Assembly: GCA_964106915.2 (NCBI GenBank)
Contig: OZ066921.1
Strand: one strand, 5' to 3'
Source of the DNA: Podarcis gaigeae
Taxonomy: Eukaryota
DNA: 64,000 bases
Below the pieces are notes generated by a model. The model worked only from the letters and a program-made list of their open reading frames with translations, did no database searches and was not told the DNA's origin. The position numbers and the translations under genes are program-made. This document shows, in pieces, positions 54,486 to 64,000 of this stretch. Numbering within the stretch: position 1 is the first letter of the stretch; each line of letters starts with the position of its first letter.

Positions 54486-56037
54486 GTCTAAGAGGTTCTG
54501 GTTCTGCCAGAGCTAAGAGTCGAAAGGTCCTGGCTAAGTAAATTTCTTCCCGTTCCCTGAAAAGGGGGCAAATGTCTTGATCCCTACAAGTGTGGGTGAT
54601 GAGACCCCAAACGGTGTTAGACATTCTCTCTCTACTGACCTGCCTCCTTGAGTCCCTTTAGGGTTATGAGCAGGACAAACAAAGGCACGTGCCATAGAAC
54701 ATACCACTTATCAAGCGACATCTATTCTTTAGGAGGGAACCATGATATACAAACTGCCAAAAAAAAAATACAGGTTCGGAAACTCCCTTCAACCGCTTGA
54801 AGGAAACAGGAAGTCAAAACTTCAGGCAGAGTCTCTTCTTTCTGGCCAGAACGGACTGCCTGGAGTTCTGCCAAACTGGGAGCCTGGAGGTTCTGAAGGA
54901 AACTGGTTCTTAGCCAGGCTTGTGCATGTGCTTGTTTAGTTTCAAGTAGTCATGACCGTATCTCTCCTCTCCCCAAAGAAGCCTGGGACCAGGATATTGG
55001 GTGCCTGGCCAGTGCTCTTGATAGCCATTTTATCCCTTTGAAAATCCAAGTTTCTAGCTGCAGAGAGGTCCTTTTTGCATGGGGCACCTTCTAAAGAGCA
55101 TCTCATCAAAAGCAGGGGGACTTGAGTTCCTCTTTGGTCTCAGTAAGCCATGGTTTGGCCTAGTGCAACATGAGAACAAGGACAACAAAATAAGTAATGG
55201 AATAGAGACATCCAGGAGTTGTCTACGCTAGACACTTACAGTTCCCCTAGAGTCCAACAGCACTTGTTTTGCACATTTAGCAGAGAGCTAACACATTGTT
55301 CCCTCATTTTTTATGGGACACCTACATGATGATGCCACCCAGTTGTTATCCTCTTGTGTGTTCTCCACAGTATCGGCTTTTTCTTCATCCATCTTCCCTT
55401 AAAAGTCTCTGCACTACACCCGCTGTCACAGGTGTGCATTTAAATCTTTTTAGGTATTGTCCATGGAGGATGGAGAGGTGGTTGTGGGTGTGCTGATGCA
55501 CATCTAAACACTGTGTGGCTTGAATGCAGCCTATTCTACAGAGGTTAAGAGCCATGTCTGTCACTTCACAGTGATATTTGTAAGCACTGGAGTACAGTTA
55601 TGGGAGCTGAACTCTACGAAGCCACAAAGCTCCGCCTCCAATTTGGGACTTACCTCCTTCTGTTAAATCATCCACATGCAGCCAAGGTCAACAACCAACA
55701 GACTGCAGAACAAGCCAATACAGAGACCATAAAGGGTGCTAATAGCTTGTGTAAAGTTCAGATTTCATCCAAGGTAGACCAGCTATCAGTCTGTAGAAAT
55801 GGGCTCTGAGCCTCACTCACAACAGATAAATTGGAAGAGAGTCTTCACTGTTGCTTTCACAAACATCAAAGGCTGGGGGCATGTGGAGTAGCCAGCTCCA
55901 GGGAACTACAAGCTTTTCCCTGCAGTCATGGTGGGAGCTGCTCCCCCAATGCTTTCTTCCCCCTGATGGCTGGTAAGAGCAGTTACATCTGTTTCTGTTT
56001 GACTGGGAACATAAGCTGGAGACCTCCAAGTCAGCAG

Positions 56038-58632
56038 TCACTCTGGGCTCCCCAACTTCTGTTTCAGGATCAAATACTATGAAGAGGGAGGGAGGGAAAA
56101 GAGAGAGAGAGGAAAGGAAGAAATAAGGAAATGAGTTGCAGATGAAGTATTGTCCTTTACACAGCACCTAGGGCACCATTGGTTCTGAAATGAATATTAA
56201 ATTGTAATAAGCACCAGTACCCAGTGGCGTAGCGTGGGGGGTGCAGGGGGGGCGGCCGCACTGGGGGCGACATCTGGGGGTTAGGGTTAGGGGGCGCAAA
56301 TCCATGGGTTAGGGGGCGCAAATTACTTGCCTTGCCCCGGGTGCTGACAACCCACGCTACGCCACTGCCAGTACCCACATTAGACTCCAATGGATAGTGC
56401 CTTTGACAGTTTTAGCTATTTGGTGCTGAACTGTCTGCGGAAGCGGACAAATGCCAGCTCCCTCGACTTGTAAAGTGAGATGAGCGCCGAAACCCCAGAG
56501 TCGTTCATGACTGGACTTGTCAGGGGTCCCTTTACCTTTTACCCACCCACTGAGATTAAAAGAAACGAAAGGTGAAGAATCATCCCAGACCCACCAGCTC
56601 TTTTCTCAATGGTGGGAGGGTGCTGTAGGCATCATCTTACAAAGGTGTGAACAAGAAGTCACAGCTCCGCACCACAGCACTGGCTCTCCTAGCATCTCCT
56701 CCCCATGCACAGGAGACACCCCATGGCTCCTTGAGGACCAGCTCTTATGTTCTTACGGCTGGCAATCGCTTGTTGCAGCCACAGCAGCTCCATGGCCAGG
56801 TGCTTTTGGTAGCACTGGAGGTCAGGCACAGCTTGGGGCATCTCTGGTACTCTTTGGAAATGAAGCTCTGCACAACAAGAGGTGCACAAAAGGTCAAGAA
56901 ACCACTCTTAGTCTGCCCCTCCCCTTGTCTCTCCTCTCTGGTTGGCTCCTCTTCCCTGCCCCCCACTACCAGGTAAGTTTATTGGGGCAGGGACTTGCCT
57001 TTTCAGCATAAGCAAAAAGCACTATGTTGGGTGATGATGCTGAAGAACAGAGAAAAACAGCAACTGTACTGCAAAGCAAAGGAAGACAGTGGGTGGGAGC
57101 TTGGAGTCTCAAATTGTTCCACATGCCTTACCTTGGCTCACCCTCGGAGACTCCATGTTGAGGATCATGCTGCTCCATTCAGATGACATGCTACTGTGGT
57201 GCTTGCCTTCCTCACTTTCTCCTAGCAAGCTGCAAGCATTCCCAGGGGGGCTGCCCACAAGATGCTCCTCAGCCTCAGTTTCTGCCACCACTTCAGCTGG
57301 TGATTGCATCTTGCAATCAAGGTCTTTTTTGGAGAGTAGCTCATCTTGACGACAAAGCACTGCCTCCTTTTCATGCAACTTGTTCTTGTTGGCCCCTGGC
57401 TTTTGGACACTTAATTCCTTGGCTTTTATTGGTTTCTGGACAGACTATATTTAAGACAGTGGAAGAAGAGCACAATTTTCAATGCATGGCTGCAACATTA
57501 AGTATCACCCTCACTTTTACTGACGTCAGTTTTCATTTCCCTCTTCTCTTTCCTCCTTGTGCAATTAAAAGCCAGCGAAATTATAAGCACTGCCAGCTTC
57601 TACCAAGAGCAGAAAGAACCAGTCACCATACCTTTGGAAGAAACACTGGCACAGGCATGGAATGACTGTCCCACTTCAGCCAATCCAGATCCCCTTCAAT
57701 CTCCTTGACGATGTTCTCATATTCCCCCTTTAAGCATTGAAATCTCTTCCTGACCAGGTAACCCCTGACATGAGCCTAGGAAGTAAATGAATCATAAAAA
57801 AATAACAATCACAAATTAGGAAGGAATTAAAGGCCATTAGCTCAAGCCTGGTTTAATAAGACAAGTCCACACAGGCCAGCCTTCTAGGGTTTCCATGAGT
57901 CCCCCCACTTCCTGGTCTTGTGGCTTTAAAAAGCAGCCCAACAAGCAGGAATTATATAGTGATGGTTTTTCTATCTCCACCTTTGCCAGGCTGCTGTAGA
58001 AGATGCAGGAGAAAGGCCAGTTAGGAAGTTGGCAGTCCTAGTATACTGCGCTCCTGACCCCAATCCCAAGAGAGGAGATGCTGGAGGCAGGAAAGGAAAG
58101 AAAGAGCTAAAGGCATATGTATGTGTGTATTTATATATTACATGCTACCACCACCACTTTTGAGAACTTTTCCCTATGGGCATTTTTTAACAGAAGCCGC
58201 CATTTCCATTTAAAAACAGCAACAGCAGAACAAAATGCTTTAAGCAGAGCAGTTTATTTGCTCCGAGGGAATCACTGAGGAAAGGGGTGGGATAGGTGAA
58301 ATGTGTATTTACGCAAAGCAGGCCGTGTTGGGAAGGGAGAGTATCTGCTTTGCATGCAGAAGCTCCCAGTTTTGCATGCAGAAGCTCCTCTCGCCTGCTT
58401 TGAACCCACATCAAGCCTCCCGCCCGCCCAGGGCTGCTGCTGCTTTTCAGGGTCCCCAAGGGGATGAGGCCACGATAGCAAGCATGAGGACGAGCACCCC
58501 TAGGTCTGCCTTGAGTGACAGGTCCACCATGCCAACCGATGCCACCCACTATCCTGCTTCCGGCACCTGAAGAGTCAACACTCTCCTCCTCAGCATCAGT
58601 CGTTGCCGCTCTTCCTCGCTCTCCTCCATCAT
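56038..58632 (-). CDS. IQCC: IQ domain-containing protein C, 5 coding exons (58632-58567, 57775-57632, 57444-57132, 56867-56749, 56076-56038), 226 aa
   Basis: MMEESEEERQRLMLRRRVLTLQ|AHVRGYLVRKRFQCLKGEYENIVKEIEGDLDWLKW..VFLPK|..|ELHF..HLAMELLWLQQAIASRKN|YLILKQKLGSPE*. IQ motif LQxxxRGxxxR plus the recalled IQCC motif HLAMELLWLQQAI. The exon 4 donor reads AT. The exon 3 acceptor has an in-frame alternative 9 nt downstream. Confidence 0.9.
56222..56367. mobile_element. hAT MITE with internal TTAGGG repeats
   Basis: 17-bp perfect TIR CAGTGGCGTAGCGTGGG; 8-bp TSD CCAGTACC. Confidence 0.92.
56443..56540 (+). mobile_element. Sauria SINE 3' fragment
   Basis: gccagctccctcg..aaagtgagatgagcgccgaaaccccagagtcg..ggggtccctttaccttt. 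Confidence 0.8.
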
Positions 58633-60000
58633 CTTCCTCAGCGTTGGCTGCCCTGGCAACCGCGCCTCTCGATGACGTCAGCGAAGCGCGACAACCGCGG
58701 GCTCTTTTCTTCTTCCTTTTTCCTTAAGTTCCTCAGAGCGGACGCTAAGTGGCGTTGTCCAGGCGCTCTCTTCGTTCTCCGGGCTGGATGACGGAGGCGA
58801 ATGTCTTCCGTCATTTCCTTCCAAATTAATTGTTGGTACAATTACATCGGTCGAGGGTTTCTCAGCAGGCGCCTATAATATCGTTCACTGCATTTTTAGT
58901 CTCCTGTTTCTCCAAATAACTGCCCCTTATTTTAGGGCTCATCCTATACGCTAATCCCTTATAACTGAAAGATGCAGGTTGATATACCAGTATGATATGA
59001 TATATTTAATGTAATATAATCTCCCCCCAACACACCTGCCCCCCCCCCCCACTGCCCGCAGCCAAGTCTTGTTGGCAACTGTTGGCGGCGAGCTCTCGCG
59101 AGACTTGTTCGCAAGGCATCGCGCATGCGCCTTTGAGCCGCGCCATTTTGGAACTGGCTGGCAGACTGGAGCGAGGCCTTGTGGGCGCGGCGGGGGAGAA
59201 ACGGCGGCAAAGAGGAGCGTTCAAAATCCGGGATCCCGACTGGAGCTGCTGTGCTTTGCCGGAACTGGGCTGGCAGGTGAGAGTCGCGGCGGCGACAACG
59301 CTTCCTCCTTCTGCCACACCGCCGACCGGCCTGAGGGAAAAGGAGGCGGAGGAAACAATGTTTGCGTGGGGGGGCGGGGCTCGTCGGGGGGGGGGCGGAA
59401 GAGGGAGGAGAAGCCGGGCTCTGAGGCTCCCATAGTTCGGTCTTTCGCCCCCTGCCTCGAGCATGCGGCCTCTCCGTCCTTCCCCCGTCTCCTTTCTTCT
59501 TCCAAGGGGAAAAAATAATGGGACTGAAGTTCCGTTGGGGTCCAGCTTGGTCGAGGGGCGGCAGTTGGAGGCTGATTGCGAGGGAGGGAGGGAGAGTGTA
59601 GATAGGGCAACCTGGGACGGGGGGGGGGGGAGTCGTACCCGACTTTACTTGGCTATGAAATGGGAGGGGAGCATAGCTGTCAACTTTCAGATTCGAAAAT
59701 AAGGGATCAGCAGCCTCGAAAATAAGGGATCCGCAGCCTCACCTGTCCCGGGGACAGTCTACGGGATATCTAACAATCCGGGATAACAGCGGGAAACGGC
59801 GCTGGAATAAGGGAATTTCCCGCAAAAAAAGGGAAGGTTGACAGCTATGGAGGGTAGGAAACGCGCGCGCACTCCCGCAGGTTAGGCGCTGAGATCCACG
59901 GGCGCTTTTCCTCCTCCGCCCCTTCTTTCTTTCCTCGGGTCTCGGATCCGAGCTTGCCACCTCTGGTGCGTAAGGGGGACTTTTCCCAAGTAACTCTTAT
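58600..60000. promoter_or_regulatory. Bidirectional CpG island promoter (IQCC on -, transposase-containing transcript on +)
   Basis: X-box GCTGCCCTGGCAAC 58647-58660; CRE TGACGTCA 58673-58680; TCTCGCGAGA 59094-59103; NRF1 GCGCATGCGC 59121-59130; YY1 CGCCATTTT 59141-59149; + strand donor CAG|GTGAGA at 59276/59277. Confidence 0.8.
59672..59849. mobile_element. 178-bp hAT MITE
   Basis: TIR CATAGCTGTCAAC (13 bp perfect, 16/17 extended); TSD GAGGGGAG/GAGGGTAG; internal 23-bp tandem duplication at 59694-59739. Confidence 0.88.
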
Positions 60001-60720
60001 GCCTTGGGGTTGCAACTGCAACTCCTCCTTTCACCGAGGACTGCCTTCTCTTCTGCTAGTTCGTTGGGCCAAGGAGCGTGCTTGGTGATAGTTTTAATTC
60101 CTCCGGTTTCCTTCGCGCCTGCCTCCTATGGTAGTATCGCCGTTTCACTCTGCAGTAAGACATTCTGACCTAACCCTTTTTGCTGCCGACTTTAGCGTAT
60201 GCTTCCAGTGCAATCGGCATGGATTTCGTTGCATGTTCTTATTTTAAGGCTTGCTTGTTCACAAGTACATGGTGTTCTCGTCTGGAGAAGGGAACATTGA
60301 TTGCATGTGTCTTGTCTCTTTTTCCCAGCCTGGCCTTCTAGGTGATCTGGATTCTGAACATGAGGCCTGGATATTTTGCAACCTGTTGCCTCAGCTTGTG
60401 GGGCAATAAAGGTAGCTGGATGTTGACCTGCAGAGTCTGCTTCGGTTGAAAGGGAAAACGTTGACTAAAAAGGGAATTGGGATTAAAACCAGCTCAGTCA
60501 CTTTTCCACTTCAAACACTTCTGAAGTCTGCAGAAGCCACCTCATGAACTTTTGAAATTCTCTTTAAATTCAGGATAACACCTTGGACTACTATTTTCCC
60601 ACATGGAATGGATAATTGTATAAACTTCTTAAGTTCTGCATACTACTTTCAAGAGCTGTTTTTGCTTTCTGGTTCAAACATTTCAAGCAAAACTGAGATT
60701 TAGTGCTTCTACGCAACAAA

Positions 60721-62667
60721 ATGCCGAAAAGAAAATGTAAATTTTCTGTTGGGCTACAGAAGAAGTATACCTGTTTTAGAAGAGGTAGAGATGATTTTGA
60801 AGGCGAATGCATGATATGTAAACCAGGTACATTTGTCTCTGTGGCAAATAAAGGAGGACGTGACTTACAATCACACGTGGAGTCCGAAAAGCACAAAAAA
60901 GCAATTCGAGGCGAAGCTTCTTCAGCACAATTAACAGACTTTTTCATAAAACCATGTAGCAAATTGGAAGATGAAGTAACCGCAGCTGAAGGAACTTTTG
61001 CTTTTCACACTGTTAAGCACCACAACAGTTATAACGTGATGGCGTGCACATCAGGCCTACTGAAGACAACATTCCCAGATTCCAATATCGCAAGGAAGTT
61101 TTCAAGTGCAAAAACCAAGACAGAAGCAATTGTAAATTCTGTCTTGGCACCCGATTGTTTGGAAAATGTTTTGAAAAGCATTGAAGAAAATGACATATGT
61201 TATTGTGGAGTTTCTACTGATGGGAGTAACCATGGTTCAGTAAAGGTGTTTCCAATAGTTATTCAGTATTTTGACTGGAAAAGTGGTGGTTTGCAGTCCA
61301 AAATAATTGAAATGCGAAGCCAACCCAATGAGACTGCAGATACAATCTTGTCATACGTGAAGGAAACTCTTGAAAGTAAAGGACTGCTAAAGAAATGCAT
61401 AGCATTCATAGGTGACAACTGCAACACAATGTTTGGAGGGATACGATGGGATTCAGAAGGAAGAAATGTGTTCGCAAAGTTGAACAATGAGCTAGATAAC
61501 AAAACTTTAATTGGTGTGGGATGTCCAGGACACATTTTGAATAATTGTGTTCATCAGGCAGCAGAAACTTTGGACATTGATGTTGAGAGCATCATTTTCA
61601 AGATATACCAGTACTTTCACATCTATACAGTCCAAACGGAGCAGTTAAAGGAGTACTGTGAATTTGTAGATACTGAATACAAAAAGCTGCTATCTCATAG
61701 CAAGACAAGGTGGTTGTCATTATTTCCAGGCGTCAATAGACTCATTCGCGTGTTTCCAGCTGTCAAGGCATTTTTTCTCTCGCAGAATAATCCACCAACA
61801 GTGTTAAAAAGGTTTTTTGAGCACGCGTTTAGTGAGGTTTATTTATTGCACTTGCAGTCTCTCATGAGTATGTTTCACTCATATATTTTAGAACTCGAAA
61901 GGGAAAATAATTCAGTTGTAGAGGTTCTGAAAGTTCTGCTTTGTGTTCAGAATGTGCTCAATGAACATAAAAGCAACAACTTTATGTCCCTCAAAGTTAA
62001 GAGCCTTCTAGAAGAAAAGCGTAAGGAGGGTCTTGGTGCAGAGTGTAACAAATTCTATGCAGAAGTAAATAGCTTATATGACAGCTGCATAGAATATCTG
62101 GGAAAATGGATGGAGTCCATGAAAGAGTTTTCATGCTTCATGTGGATGTCTCTTAGTGAGTCACTTGAGTGGGATAAGGTAGAACTTTCCATAAAATTTC
62201 TCCTGGACAGGGATGTGTCCATAGATGATGTGAAATGCTTTGATCAATTCTGCAACCTCAAGAAGTTTGTGGATCAATACAAAGGTGAGGATAGGTTCAT
62301 TAATCTTCAGGCACATCAGAAGTGGACCAAGTACTTTGAGACTTCCCAAAACATGTGCCACTCAGAACTTTTGAAGATTGCACAGTTTTTTTTTGCTGTT
62401 GCATCACATGATAATGCAAATATGGAACACATTTTCTCTTTGATGCAGAGTTGGTGGAGCAAAGAAAGAGGCCACTTATCCTTGGAATCGCTGCGGAGTA
62501 TATTGCTAGTACAATATAATTATAAGCACTTTACTTGCAAGGAATTTCATGCTTATCTCTTAAGCAATAAGCAGTTGTTGAATAAGATAAGATCTACAGA
62601 GAAATATGCTTGGGCCAGACAACATCAGAAAGAAGAACAAAGTGCATTTGAAAGTGACATACCATGA
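60721..62667 (+). CDS. Intact hAT-superfamily (Blackjack-like) transposase or transposase-derived protein, 648 aa
   Basis: Single ORF from aaaATG (in-frame stop upstream at 60694). BED-like C-x2-C-x18-H-x5-H finger, STDGSN, IGDNCN, CPGH, KTRWLS, NMEHIFSLM, and a hAT dimerisation-like C-terminus. Confidence 0.92.
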   Translation: MPKRKCKFSVGLQKKYTCFRRGRDDFEGECMICKPGTFVSVANKGGRDLQSHVESEKHKKAIRGEASSAQLTDFFIKPCSKLEDEVTAAEGTFAFHTVKHHNSYNVMACTSGLLKTTFPDSNIARKFSSAKTKTEAIVNSVLAPDCLENVLKSIEENDICYCGVSTDGSNHGSVKVFPIVIQYFDWKSGGLQSKIIEMRSQPNETADTILSYVKETLESKGLLKKCIAFIGDNCNTMFGGIRWDSEGRNVFAKLNNELDNKTLIGVGCPGHILNNCVHQAAETLDIDVESIIFKIYQYFHIYTVQTEQLKEYCEFVDTEYKKLLSHSKTRWLSLFPGVNRLIRVFPAVKAFFLSQNNPPTVLKRFFEHAFSEVYLLHLQSLMSMFHSYILELERENNSVVEVLKVLLCVQNVLNEHKSNNFMSLKVKSLLEEKRKEGLGAECNKFYAEVNSLYDSCIEYLGKWMESMKEFSCFMWMSLSESLEWDKVELSIKFLLDRDVSIDDVKCFDQFCNLKKFVDQYKGEDRFINLQAHQKWTKYFETSQNMCHSELLKIAQFFFAVASHDNANMEHIFSLMQSWWSKERGHLSLESLRSILLVQYNYKHFTCKEFHAYLLSNKQLLNKIRSTEKYAWARQHQKEEQSAFESDIP

Positions 62668-62690
62668 GGTAATTAAAAGTAGAAGTTAGC

Positions 62691-62732
62691 AAATGTGTCC
62701 TCTTTTTTGTTCTTCAATATATGGCAACCTTA
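62691..62732 (+). mobile_element. Right terminus (TIR and subterminal motif) of the hAT element
   Basis: TGTCCTCTTTTT..ATATGGCAACCTTA; the reverse complement TAAGGTTGCCATAT resembles recalled Blackjack-type TAGGGTTGCCA ends. Confidence 0.65.
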
Positions 62733-63587
62733 GTCTGGAACTGAGAGGAGTGTTATGCACTGTTGACACTAAATAAATGTTTTGTACTGACAGTATATGG
62801 TGAATGCTAATGTATAAGTTTGCTTGAAGACAGAGATGCATTATTAAACGGTCTGTCTCCCCACACTGCCTCATATTTAAATCAAGCCTTGCAATTATGT
62901 ATTTGTGCCCCATCTCTCAGCATTAGTTCCCAAGGCAGTTTACAATGACATTTAAAAATCCATCCAAGAAATGAAAGGGCCCCTGAGCAAATGAATGGGG
63001 AGGGCACAGGAGGGTGACACAGCCAAGAGGAGCCTTGGGGCAGAGCAGCAGTCCCCTAGGATTGCTATCAGCCAGATAAGTCACTAAAGTGTAGTGCCAG
63101 TTCCCTCCCTTCAAAACATATTAGTATTAAAAGCTGAAAAACTATAGGAGAGCCAATATACTCGCACGCACCCTCCACTGGTATAGACCATCTAGCAGGA
63201 CCATCAAGACATTTTCAATCCCAAATCTGGGTCAGAATCAATTTTATAGCAAATGTGGTTATAGTATGAACAAGAATTGAGAAAAAAATATTTTAAGACA
63301 CAGTTTGCCAGTCTGACTTGCACTGCCACAATGATGTCTCCCAGCCCACATAAAGCCCCTGAACTCCTGGCTTACTGCCCCCTTGATCATGAGATGATGA
63401 GATTCCTTACCACCTTCTCCCTTGAAAAGTACTTAGAACTGAAGGAGGCAGTTGGACACCCGTTTCCCGCACGATGTGCTCTCAAGGCTCAGATTAATTC
63501 TACTGGACCCAACTTTTGCACAAATCCCTTGGAAAAGTGGTGAGTGCATGCACACTTTCTCTTCACACCCCTGGTTGATGTTAACTG

Positions 63588-63990
63588 TCGTGGTTACAGG
63601 TAGGTAGCCGTATTGGTCTGCCGTAGTCGAAACAAAAAAAAAATTCCTTACAGTAGCACCTTAGAGACCAACTAAGTTATTGGTATGAGCTTTCATGTGC
63701 ATGCACACTTCTTGAGATACACTGAAACAGAAGTCTCCAGACCCTTATATATTGTGAGAGGGTGGGGAGGGGTATTACTCAGAAGGGTGGTGGGAATTGC
63801 AGTCGTTAACAGTCTATCAGCTAATCACCCATTCCCACCACCCTTCTGAGTAATACCCTCCCCACCCTCTCATTATATATAAGGGTCTGGTGACTTCTGT
63901 TTCAGTGTATCTCAAGAAGTGTGCATGCACATGAAAGCTCATACCAATAAAAAACTTAGTTGGTCTCTACTGGAAGGAACTTTTTTATTT
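63588..63990. mobile_element. Penelope-like insertion made of two inverted pLTR arms
   Basis: Arms at about 63634-63798 and 63831-63990 are near-perfect reverse complements, each with a hammerhead-like core. Flanking 9-bp repeat TGTTAACTG at 63579 and 63991. Confidence 0.8.
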
Positions 63991-64000
63991 TGTTAACTGA

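Follow-up and report, generated by a model that had tools for sequence, protein, structure and literature searches.

Does the hAT transposase reading frame carried on contig OZ066921.1 of Podarcis gaigeae (GCA_964106915.2) still belong to a transposon, or has it become a gene of its host? Domestication of hAT transposases is well known, and an earlier note, made from the sequence of a 64,000-nt stretch of this contig, had proposed a domesticated transposase gene behind a host CpG-island promoter. That whole stretch, hereafter the window, was analysed here; the gene lies on its + strand, and no stretch of N interrupts the region. We are highly confident that the locus is a domesticated hAT transposase gene of lacertid lizards, because orthologues stand at the same site, the ratio of non-synonymous to synonymous substitution rates (dN/dS) is below 1, a spliced junction was found, and many two-ended copies are not in evidence. 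Given domestication, a non-cutting DNA-binding role is likely for the product, and we hold with moderate confidence the full reading of a domesticated, immobile hAT gene encoding a putative non-cutting DNA-binding regulator.

The open reading frame (ORF) spans 60721-62667 (+; ATG 60721, TGA 62667) and encodes 648 amino acids without interruption, as the earlier note had claimed. It is the longest ORF in the window, the runner-up having 320 amino acids, and a Pfam scan of seven other long window ORFs matched no family. All of the motifs previously read from the letters could be placed at named residues: a C2H2 finger (residues 30-58, ligands C30/C33/H52/H58), an RNase H core with D167, D232 and the CxxH motif C268-P-G-H271, a helical insertion domain with R330-W331, and a C-terminal part with the catalytic E569, followed by H570. 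Pfam and PDB sequence searches with the single window protein returned nothing useful, PF05699 and zf-BED both being unmatched. PF05699 was matched by 8 of 21 aligned relatives, and a profile built on 94 relatives matched Hermes (E 3e-4), with the CxxH and Glu regions aligned. With an AlphaFold model of the window protein (predicted local distance difference test score 87.6), Foldseek gave Hermes as the sole match below E 0.001 (best E 6e-10, template modelling score 0.51/0.66). The D-D-E residues, CxxH, RW and Hermes-like fold thus identify the product as a hAT superfamily transposase. Its closest database protein was an unnamed protein of Podarcis raffonei (99%), the annotated orthologues carry no real name, in agreement with the earlier failure to recognise any named vertebrate gene, and a literature search with the orthologue locus identifiers retrieved no paper on the gene.

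Four other lacertids have orthologues of 648 amino acids, which form one protein cluster: P. raffonei, P. lilfordi, P. muralis and Zootoca vivipara. Genomic sequence was fetched for all of these but P. muralis, and in each of the three genomes the intact gene occupies the same position, with EVA1B/IQCC to one side and a DCX-domain gene to the other; all annotated orthologues begin at the transposase ATG. The window and Zootoca ORFs differ at 66 bases, 39 of them synonymous and 27 non-synonymous, giving a dN/dS of 0.18 (NG86), 0.23 (LWL85) or 0.34 (YN00), well under 1; the synonymous excess was robust to transition bias (P 2e-8 at kappa 3, 5e-7 at kappa 6). Divergence from Zootoca was 0.034 per site in the ORF against 0.06-0.14 in the flanks, and the 1947-bp ORF contained no indel where 16-39 were expected, while the flanks had 8-20 per kb. 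Neutral simulation at the intron rate produced 91-95 amino-acid differences, compared with the 27 seen, and stop-free pairs in no more than 0.7% of cases. The ORF has therefore been under purifying selection after its insertion. By parsimony, the tip branches leading to Podarcis and Zootoca had an omega (dN/dS) of 0.2-0.45. Since the stem before their split holds about as many synonymous changes (11) as each tip (10 and 10), the insertion is, as a rough estimate, twice as old as the Podarcis-Zootoca split. The gene had been suggested to be squamate-specific; lacertid-specific appears right, whereas a squamate-wide gene does not, snake and skink/iguanian relatives being separate clades.

Is the ORF part of a host transcription unit? 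The gene starts in a CpG-island promoter at 59050-59450 (+), whose GC content of 0.65 and CpG observed/expected ratio of 0.92 bear out the CpG island noted earlier. Within it, TCTCGCGAGA at 59094, with a single occurrence in the window against 0.02 expected, is followed on the same strand by GCGCATGCGC at ~59121 and CGCCATTTT at ~59140; we take these to be motifs of BANP/ZBTB33, NRF1 and YY1 type, respectively. P. raffonei and Zootoca have kept this promoter. Parts of the stretch are present in eighteen runs, from four organisms and six studies, that were guessed to be RNA, and 3 of these runs cover the ORF; their contigs show neither transcript start nor end nor level. In one of these runs, X4, a contig covers 59166-59273 and joins 60326, and placing the cut at +3 gives a GT..AG joint, 59276->60329, which is the junction predicted by the earlier note; this joint was absent from DNA run X19. 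Exon 1 (59166-59276, +) is non-coding, its true start lying perhaps slightly upstream. It had been described as free of ATG; an ATG does occur at 59125, inside the NRF1-like motif, but precedes the first RNA base seen (59166).

Intron 1 (59277-60328, +) has both splice sites kept in P. raffonei and Zootoca. Two acceptors had been proposed, and that at 60327-60328 is used in run X4; the second, at 60572-60573, has its AG in the DNA, but none of the RNA-type runs showed a joint to it. The proven acceptor lies 392 bases upstream of the ORF ATG, and the 5′ untranslated region (UTR) in exon 2 (60329-60720, +) contains five upstream ATGs (60360, 60420, 60544, 60603 and 60608), which the earlier note had overlooked. 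Downstream, the host poly(A) signal AATAAA at 62772-62777 (+) lies outside the element, as had been stated, and is kept in P. raffonei and Zootoca; RNA-type contigs thin out beyond ~62930, although contigs cannot show an end. A nested arrangement like that of ZBED6 and ZC3H11A, using a donor after the stop codon, is not supported: RNA-type contigs read through this donor without showing a joint, and the site reads GC in P. raffonei.

The source of the ORF could be approached through a free relative. A 79%-identical protein cluster was recovered from short contigs of many public runs (ERR3138xxx / ERR4842565), and the corresponding element is complete, 2474 bp long, with two perfect 14-bp terminal inverted repeats (TIRs), which we take to be Blackjack-type; a literature search on the TIR motif gave nothing relevant. 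Its copies have differing flanks, 0-2 differences between them and an unaltered active site, the contigs joining flanks of different copies. The free element is a young multi-copy transposon and a candidate active one. One of its contigs carries a second ORF that groups with proteins of Blattella germanica, and the run numbers were judged to fit the dates of two cockroach gut-metagenome studies; the host is probably B. germanica. The free element shares 82% DNA identity over 1965 bases and 79% protein identity with the lizard ORF, at a synonymous distance of 0.46-0.75. Vertical descent from an insect-lizard ancestor is incompatible with such similarity, which would imply at least one horizontal transfer of a hAT element linking an insect and the lacertid lineage.

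Comparison with the free element also defined what is left of the transposon around the gene. The right end lies at 62696-62732 (+), with 34 of the last 37 bases identical, and its TIR at 62719-62732, where the earlier note had placed it, agrees at 13 of 14 bases. The left TIR had been reported missing, and our best match upstream of the ORF reached only 10 of 14 bases, which is within background; of the left 346 bases of the free element the window retains nothing. The left junction of the 8-bp target duplication is lost, a 7/8 match at 60280 being at chance level. DNA contigs had single-copy depth over the promoter and at most ~4x that over the ORF, as a rough measure. Many near-identical two-ended copies, named by the earlier note as evidence against domestication, left no sign in protein clusters, DNA-run depth or a TIR search. 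The gene copy is thus of low copy number and immobile. Excision of hAT elements needs both ends, and their finger reads subterminal repeats (PMC10368747); from this mechanism it follows that a one-ended copy is not excisable as a unit. The claim of an immobilised, host-expressed gene holds on the right end alone being present, the host promoter and the spliced joint of run X4. Separately, depth in a DNA run rose to ~11,000, compared with ~45, in two bins around the right end (62524-62875; ~62680-62720), which suggests that a very abundant short repeat with a similar right end exists.

Two further lacertid genes of the same kind were identified at 84% identity, one between JTB and RAB13 (L002:10001-11971; Podarcis, Zootoca and Lacerta) and one beside C11orf98/INTS5 (L014:10001-11884; seen only in Podarcis). 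Quick trees placed the free element, with 100% support, as the sister of the group formed by the three lizard genes. Each of the three lies on the strand opposite to a host gene, a few kb from its 5′ end, with CpG-rich DNA between. The JTB sibling has a high CpG observed/expected ratio (0.78) and is strongly constrained, the INTS5 sibling only weakly (omega 0.55-0.85), and both have an AG acceptor 19-25 bases 5′ of the ATG. All three kept the right end. We consider that three separate insertions of one element in a single burst fit these sequences best. Had a single domestication been followed by gene duplication, an alternative that concerns the history of the genes and not their function, one could account for the L348V replacement common to all three and for the lack of a left end, no left TIR or decayed left end being found in any of them or at the parent IQCC locus described below, with homology among siblings and to the free element beginning only ~10-25 bases 5′ of the ATG. 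However, their homology ends exactly at the last base of the right TIR, neither flank is common, promoters and first exons are unrelated, and the three branches converge almost at a point in the tree, which makes duplication improbable. Over the UTR at 60590-60720, DNA-run depth was 2-4x background though both siblings fail to align there; further relic copies of the element may exist, and the exon-2 UTR could in part derive from the 5′ region of the lizard element itself. A Pack-hAT as the carrier that delivered the promoter is not supported, as the promoter region has single-copy depth and no flanking TIRs.

Whether the product can still cut depends on its active site, in which the three siblings bear different lesions: E569G in the JTB gene, D167G in the C11orf98/INTS5 gene, and Asp564 with R570H in the window gene (62410-62430, +), where E569 itself is kept. 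The earlier note was right that the Arg of ERxFS is replaced by His (H570), and it overlooked Asp564, a one-codon insertion five residues ahead of the catalytic Glu. Both changes are fixed in four Podarcis species and Zootoca. Of 73 scored family members, 69 have the spacing His-x4-Glu and 67 an Arg directly following the Glu, in line with Hermes, while the window protein has an x5 spacing and a His in place of the Arg. Further changes (R416H, R243W, A270G and Q578W) affect columns that are 83-96% conserved, and several of them are CpG-type transitions. Because the Glu helix carries fixed lesions, the retained D-D-E is not proof of activity.

Several observations weigh against a domesticated, non-cutting regulator. 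The splice was seen in one contig, at a depth of 4.4, from a run (X4) guessed to be RNA, and a contig of run X1 includes the intron. Parsimony indicates weak constraint on the stem that precedes the Podarcis-Zootoca split (omega 0.4-0.6, not significant), no Lacerta agilis orthologue occurs among annotated proteins, and no empty site was visible in the outgroups Rhineura and Liasis, approached via EVA1B, where synteny breaks. The window protein retains all three acidic residues, CxxH and RW, which would allow catalysis, and no published mutant of the Arg that follows E572 in Hermes came up in a literature search. The weak stem, the lack of an L. agilis protein and the upstream ATGs, which could silence translation, would suit a neutral young remnant whose frame is intact by chance and which is transcribed by read-through. 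We regard such a remnant as highly improbable, given the dN/dS values, the zero indels and the simulations, the conserved splice sites and promoter, and the survival of the gene while the adjoining IQCC copy decays.

Among functions for a domesticated protein, a nuclease acting as transposase in trans, which moves non-autonomous elements or makes programmed breaks, has analogues in Kat1, THAP9 and PGBD5. The window gene is the sole sibling that combines D167, D232, E569, CxxH and RW, all of which are the same in Podarcis and Zootoca, and the very high DNA-run depth at ~62680-62720 hints at a high-copy repeat with a similar end; Kat1, moreover, tolerates the replacement of several conserved C-terminal serines and stays active (PMC4763223). 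With 27 differences over 648 sites, however, three unchanged residues are expected by chance, the insertion and R570H lie right beside the Glu, other conserved Arg residues were lost by CpG-type changes, and the siblings were retained despite lost catalytic residues, so that we consider a persisting nuclease unlikely. Less probable still is a role independent of cognate DNA sites, as a scaffold or chromatin co-factor working through the self-association domains. Such a role would agree with the constraint on the whole fold and with a finger that tolerates non-ligand changes (4 of 35 lineage-specific replacements fall in residues 1-62), but all four zinc ligands are invariant in the three siblings and also in related snake genes, and no new host domain has been fused.

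For the favoured reading, a non-cutting DNA-binding regulator, we propose the following course of events. A hAT element would have entered the lacertid lineage by horizontal transfer and then jumped, and at least three copies, lacking the left end, would have come to lie downstream of host CpG-island promoters and been retained. As a copy under a strong host promoter would persist only if it could not be excised, loss of the end may have come first. The window copy would be transcribed from its housekeeping-type promoter, spliced and presumably polyadenylated at the host signal, with translation probably at a low level behind the upstream ATGs. Selection appears to have preserved the entire fold, with its zinc finger and oligomerisation parts, and to have let the active site erode. 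The protein would then probably still oligomerise and bind terminal or subterminal motifs of its own transposon family without cutting. In this way it might hold down related transposons, control host genes close to relic ends, or do both, in the manner of ZBED1/4/6.

ZBED1, ZBED4 and ZBED6 are domesticated Ac-type hAT transposases used as regulators (PMC3606216, PMC7786948). The window gene resembles them as a stand-alone full-length ORF in one exon, immobile and host-expressed, with a finger, a DDE core and a dimerisation part. It differs in belonging to another hAT lineage, in being far younger and limited to lacertids, and in having three parallel captures and a close intact relative; no zf-BED match was obtained, no ZBED was among the 120 best homologues, and its nearest kin are free elements. 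Splicing of a transposase exon to a host upstream exon recalls host-transposase fusions (Cosby et al., bioRxiv 10.1101/2020.05.07.082677), and the AG acceptor that precedes the ATG by 19-25 bases in the JTB and C11orf98 siblings has its counterpart in 8 of 9 cases of that study. In contrast to those fusions, the upstream exon here is non-coding, no KRAB, SCAN or SET domain is fused, and the gene is outside that survey. Kat1 of Kluyveromyces lactis (PMC4763223) is likewise a domesticated, immobile hAT with DDE, CxxH and W kept; Kat1 was shown to cut, whereas the Glu helix of the window protein is altered. Hermes (PDB 6DWZ, 4D1Q, 8EDG) shares the overall fold, with the CxxH and Glu-Arg-x-Phe-Ser regions aligning, although identity is 14% and Hermes is an active two-ended element. 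The free element has equal length and the same right end, and differs in its two TIRs, many copies and unaltered active site.

Related genes were observed in other lineages. Snakes (boas, pythons, vipers, colubrids and elapids) have a tandem set of ~3 hAT-derived genes near FRMD8 (L015:10001-11737, L016:1804-3555 and L016:10001-11734), cut just after the catalytic Glu; this set is an independent capture and apparently unnamed. Relatives in a skink and a fence lizard (Tiliqua and Sceloporus; P0036, P0040 and P0042) form their own clade, as does a caecilian relative (Microcaecilia, P0023), these proteins being full-length or C-terminally cut; further domestications are possible in all three. Orthology of the lacertid gene with the snake or skink/iguanian genes was excluded by different neighbours and by the approximately unbiased test, which rejected a single squamate clade (p 2e-117 for lacertids and snakes as one clade).

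The gene occupies a rearranged site. Lacertids carry two IQCC copies, the parent being 1.07 Mb away between SH3D21 and TMEM234, and the duplicate (55825-58786, -; ~85% identical to the parent copy; related coordinates L020:9853-12721 and L003:8166) adjoins the transposase gene. The duplicate is decaying, with a low quality flag in L. agilis and AT at the exon-4 donor in the window, and in the Zootoca assembly it is cleanly deleted, with the transposase gene, its promoter and both splice sites retained. Nothing at the parent IQCC locus matches the promoter region (58790-59450), and the promoter is therefore the transposase gene's own; one shared with IQCC was rejected, as the duplicate ends at 58786 and Zootoca lacks that copy. 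In Rhineura and Liasis neither IQCC nor the transposase gene was found within 10 kb past EVA1B; a role of the transposon in causing the rearrangement would be speculative. Beyond the gene, on the side away from the IQCC duplicate, 130 bases at 63238-63367 match the 3′ flank of the parent IQCC (L020:12779-12907, 78%), which is either an old repeat or a trace of rearrangement. A long inverted repeat at 63590-63995, with 95-nt arms at 97% and inner 33-nt arms, is presumably Penelope-like and is younger here than the Zootoca split. Intron 1 contains an unrelated high-copy hAT-type miniature inverted-repeat transposable element (59672-59849; 17-bp TIR, 8-bp target duplication), present in Podarcis only and absent from Zootoca, into which a second element of ~1 kb is inserted in P. 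raffonei (L001:7886-8955).

In vertebrates, most domesticated hAT genes date back hundreds of millions of years and have outlived their parent elements. The value of the lacertid gene lies in its youth, in three parallel captures with differing lesions, and in an intact two-ended relative that is 79% identical. Early steps of domestication, namely the order of immobilisation, promoter capture and catalysis loss, thereby become directly testable, as does the question of whether a tamed transposase first serves to restrain its own family or to regulate genes. Related elements seem to have been tamed independently in snakes and in skinks/iguanians, and this hAT lineage therefore appears capture-prone in squamates. 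A more daring possibility, which we rate as doubtful, is that the three parallel tamings of one horizontally acquired element, all by loss of the left end and splicing onto a CpG-island promoter, yielded two dead enzymes and, in the window, a still-cutting or tuned-down nuclease that binds abundant elements with related ends and perhaps moves or silences those non-autonomous elements. If this were true, experiments could retrace each step by which the parasite became a host gene, as an intact relative is alive in an insect.

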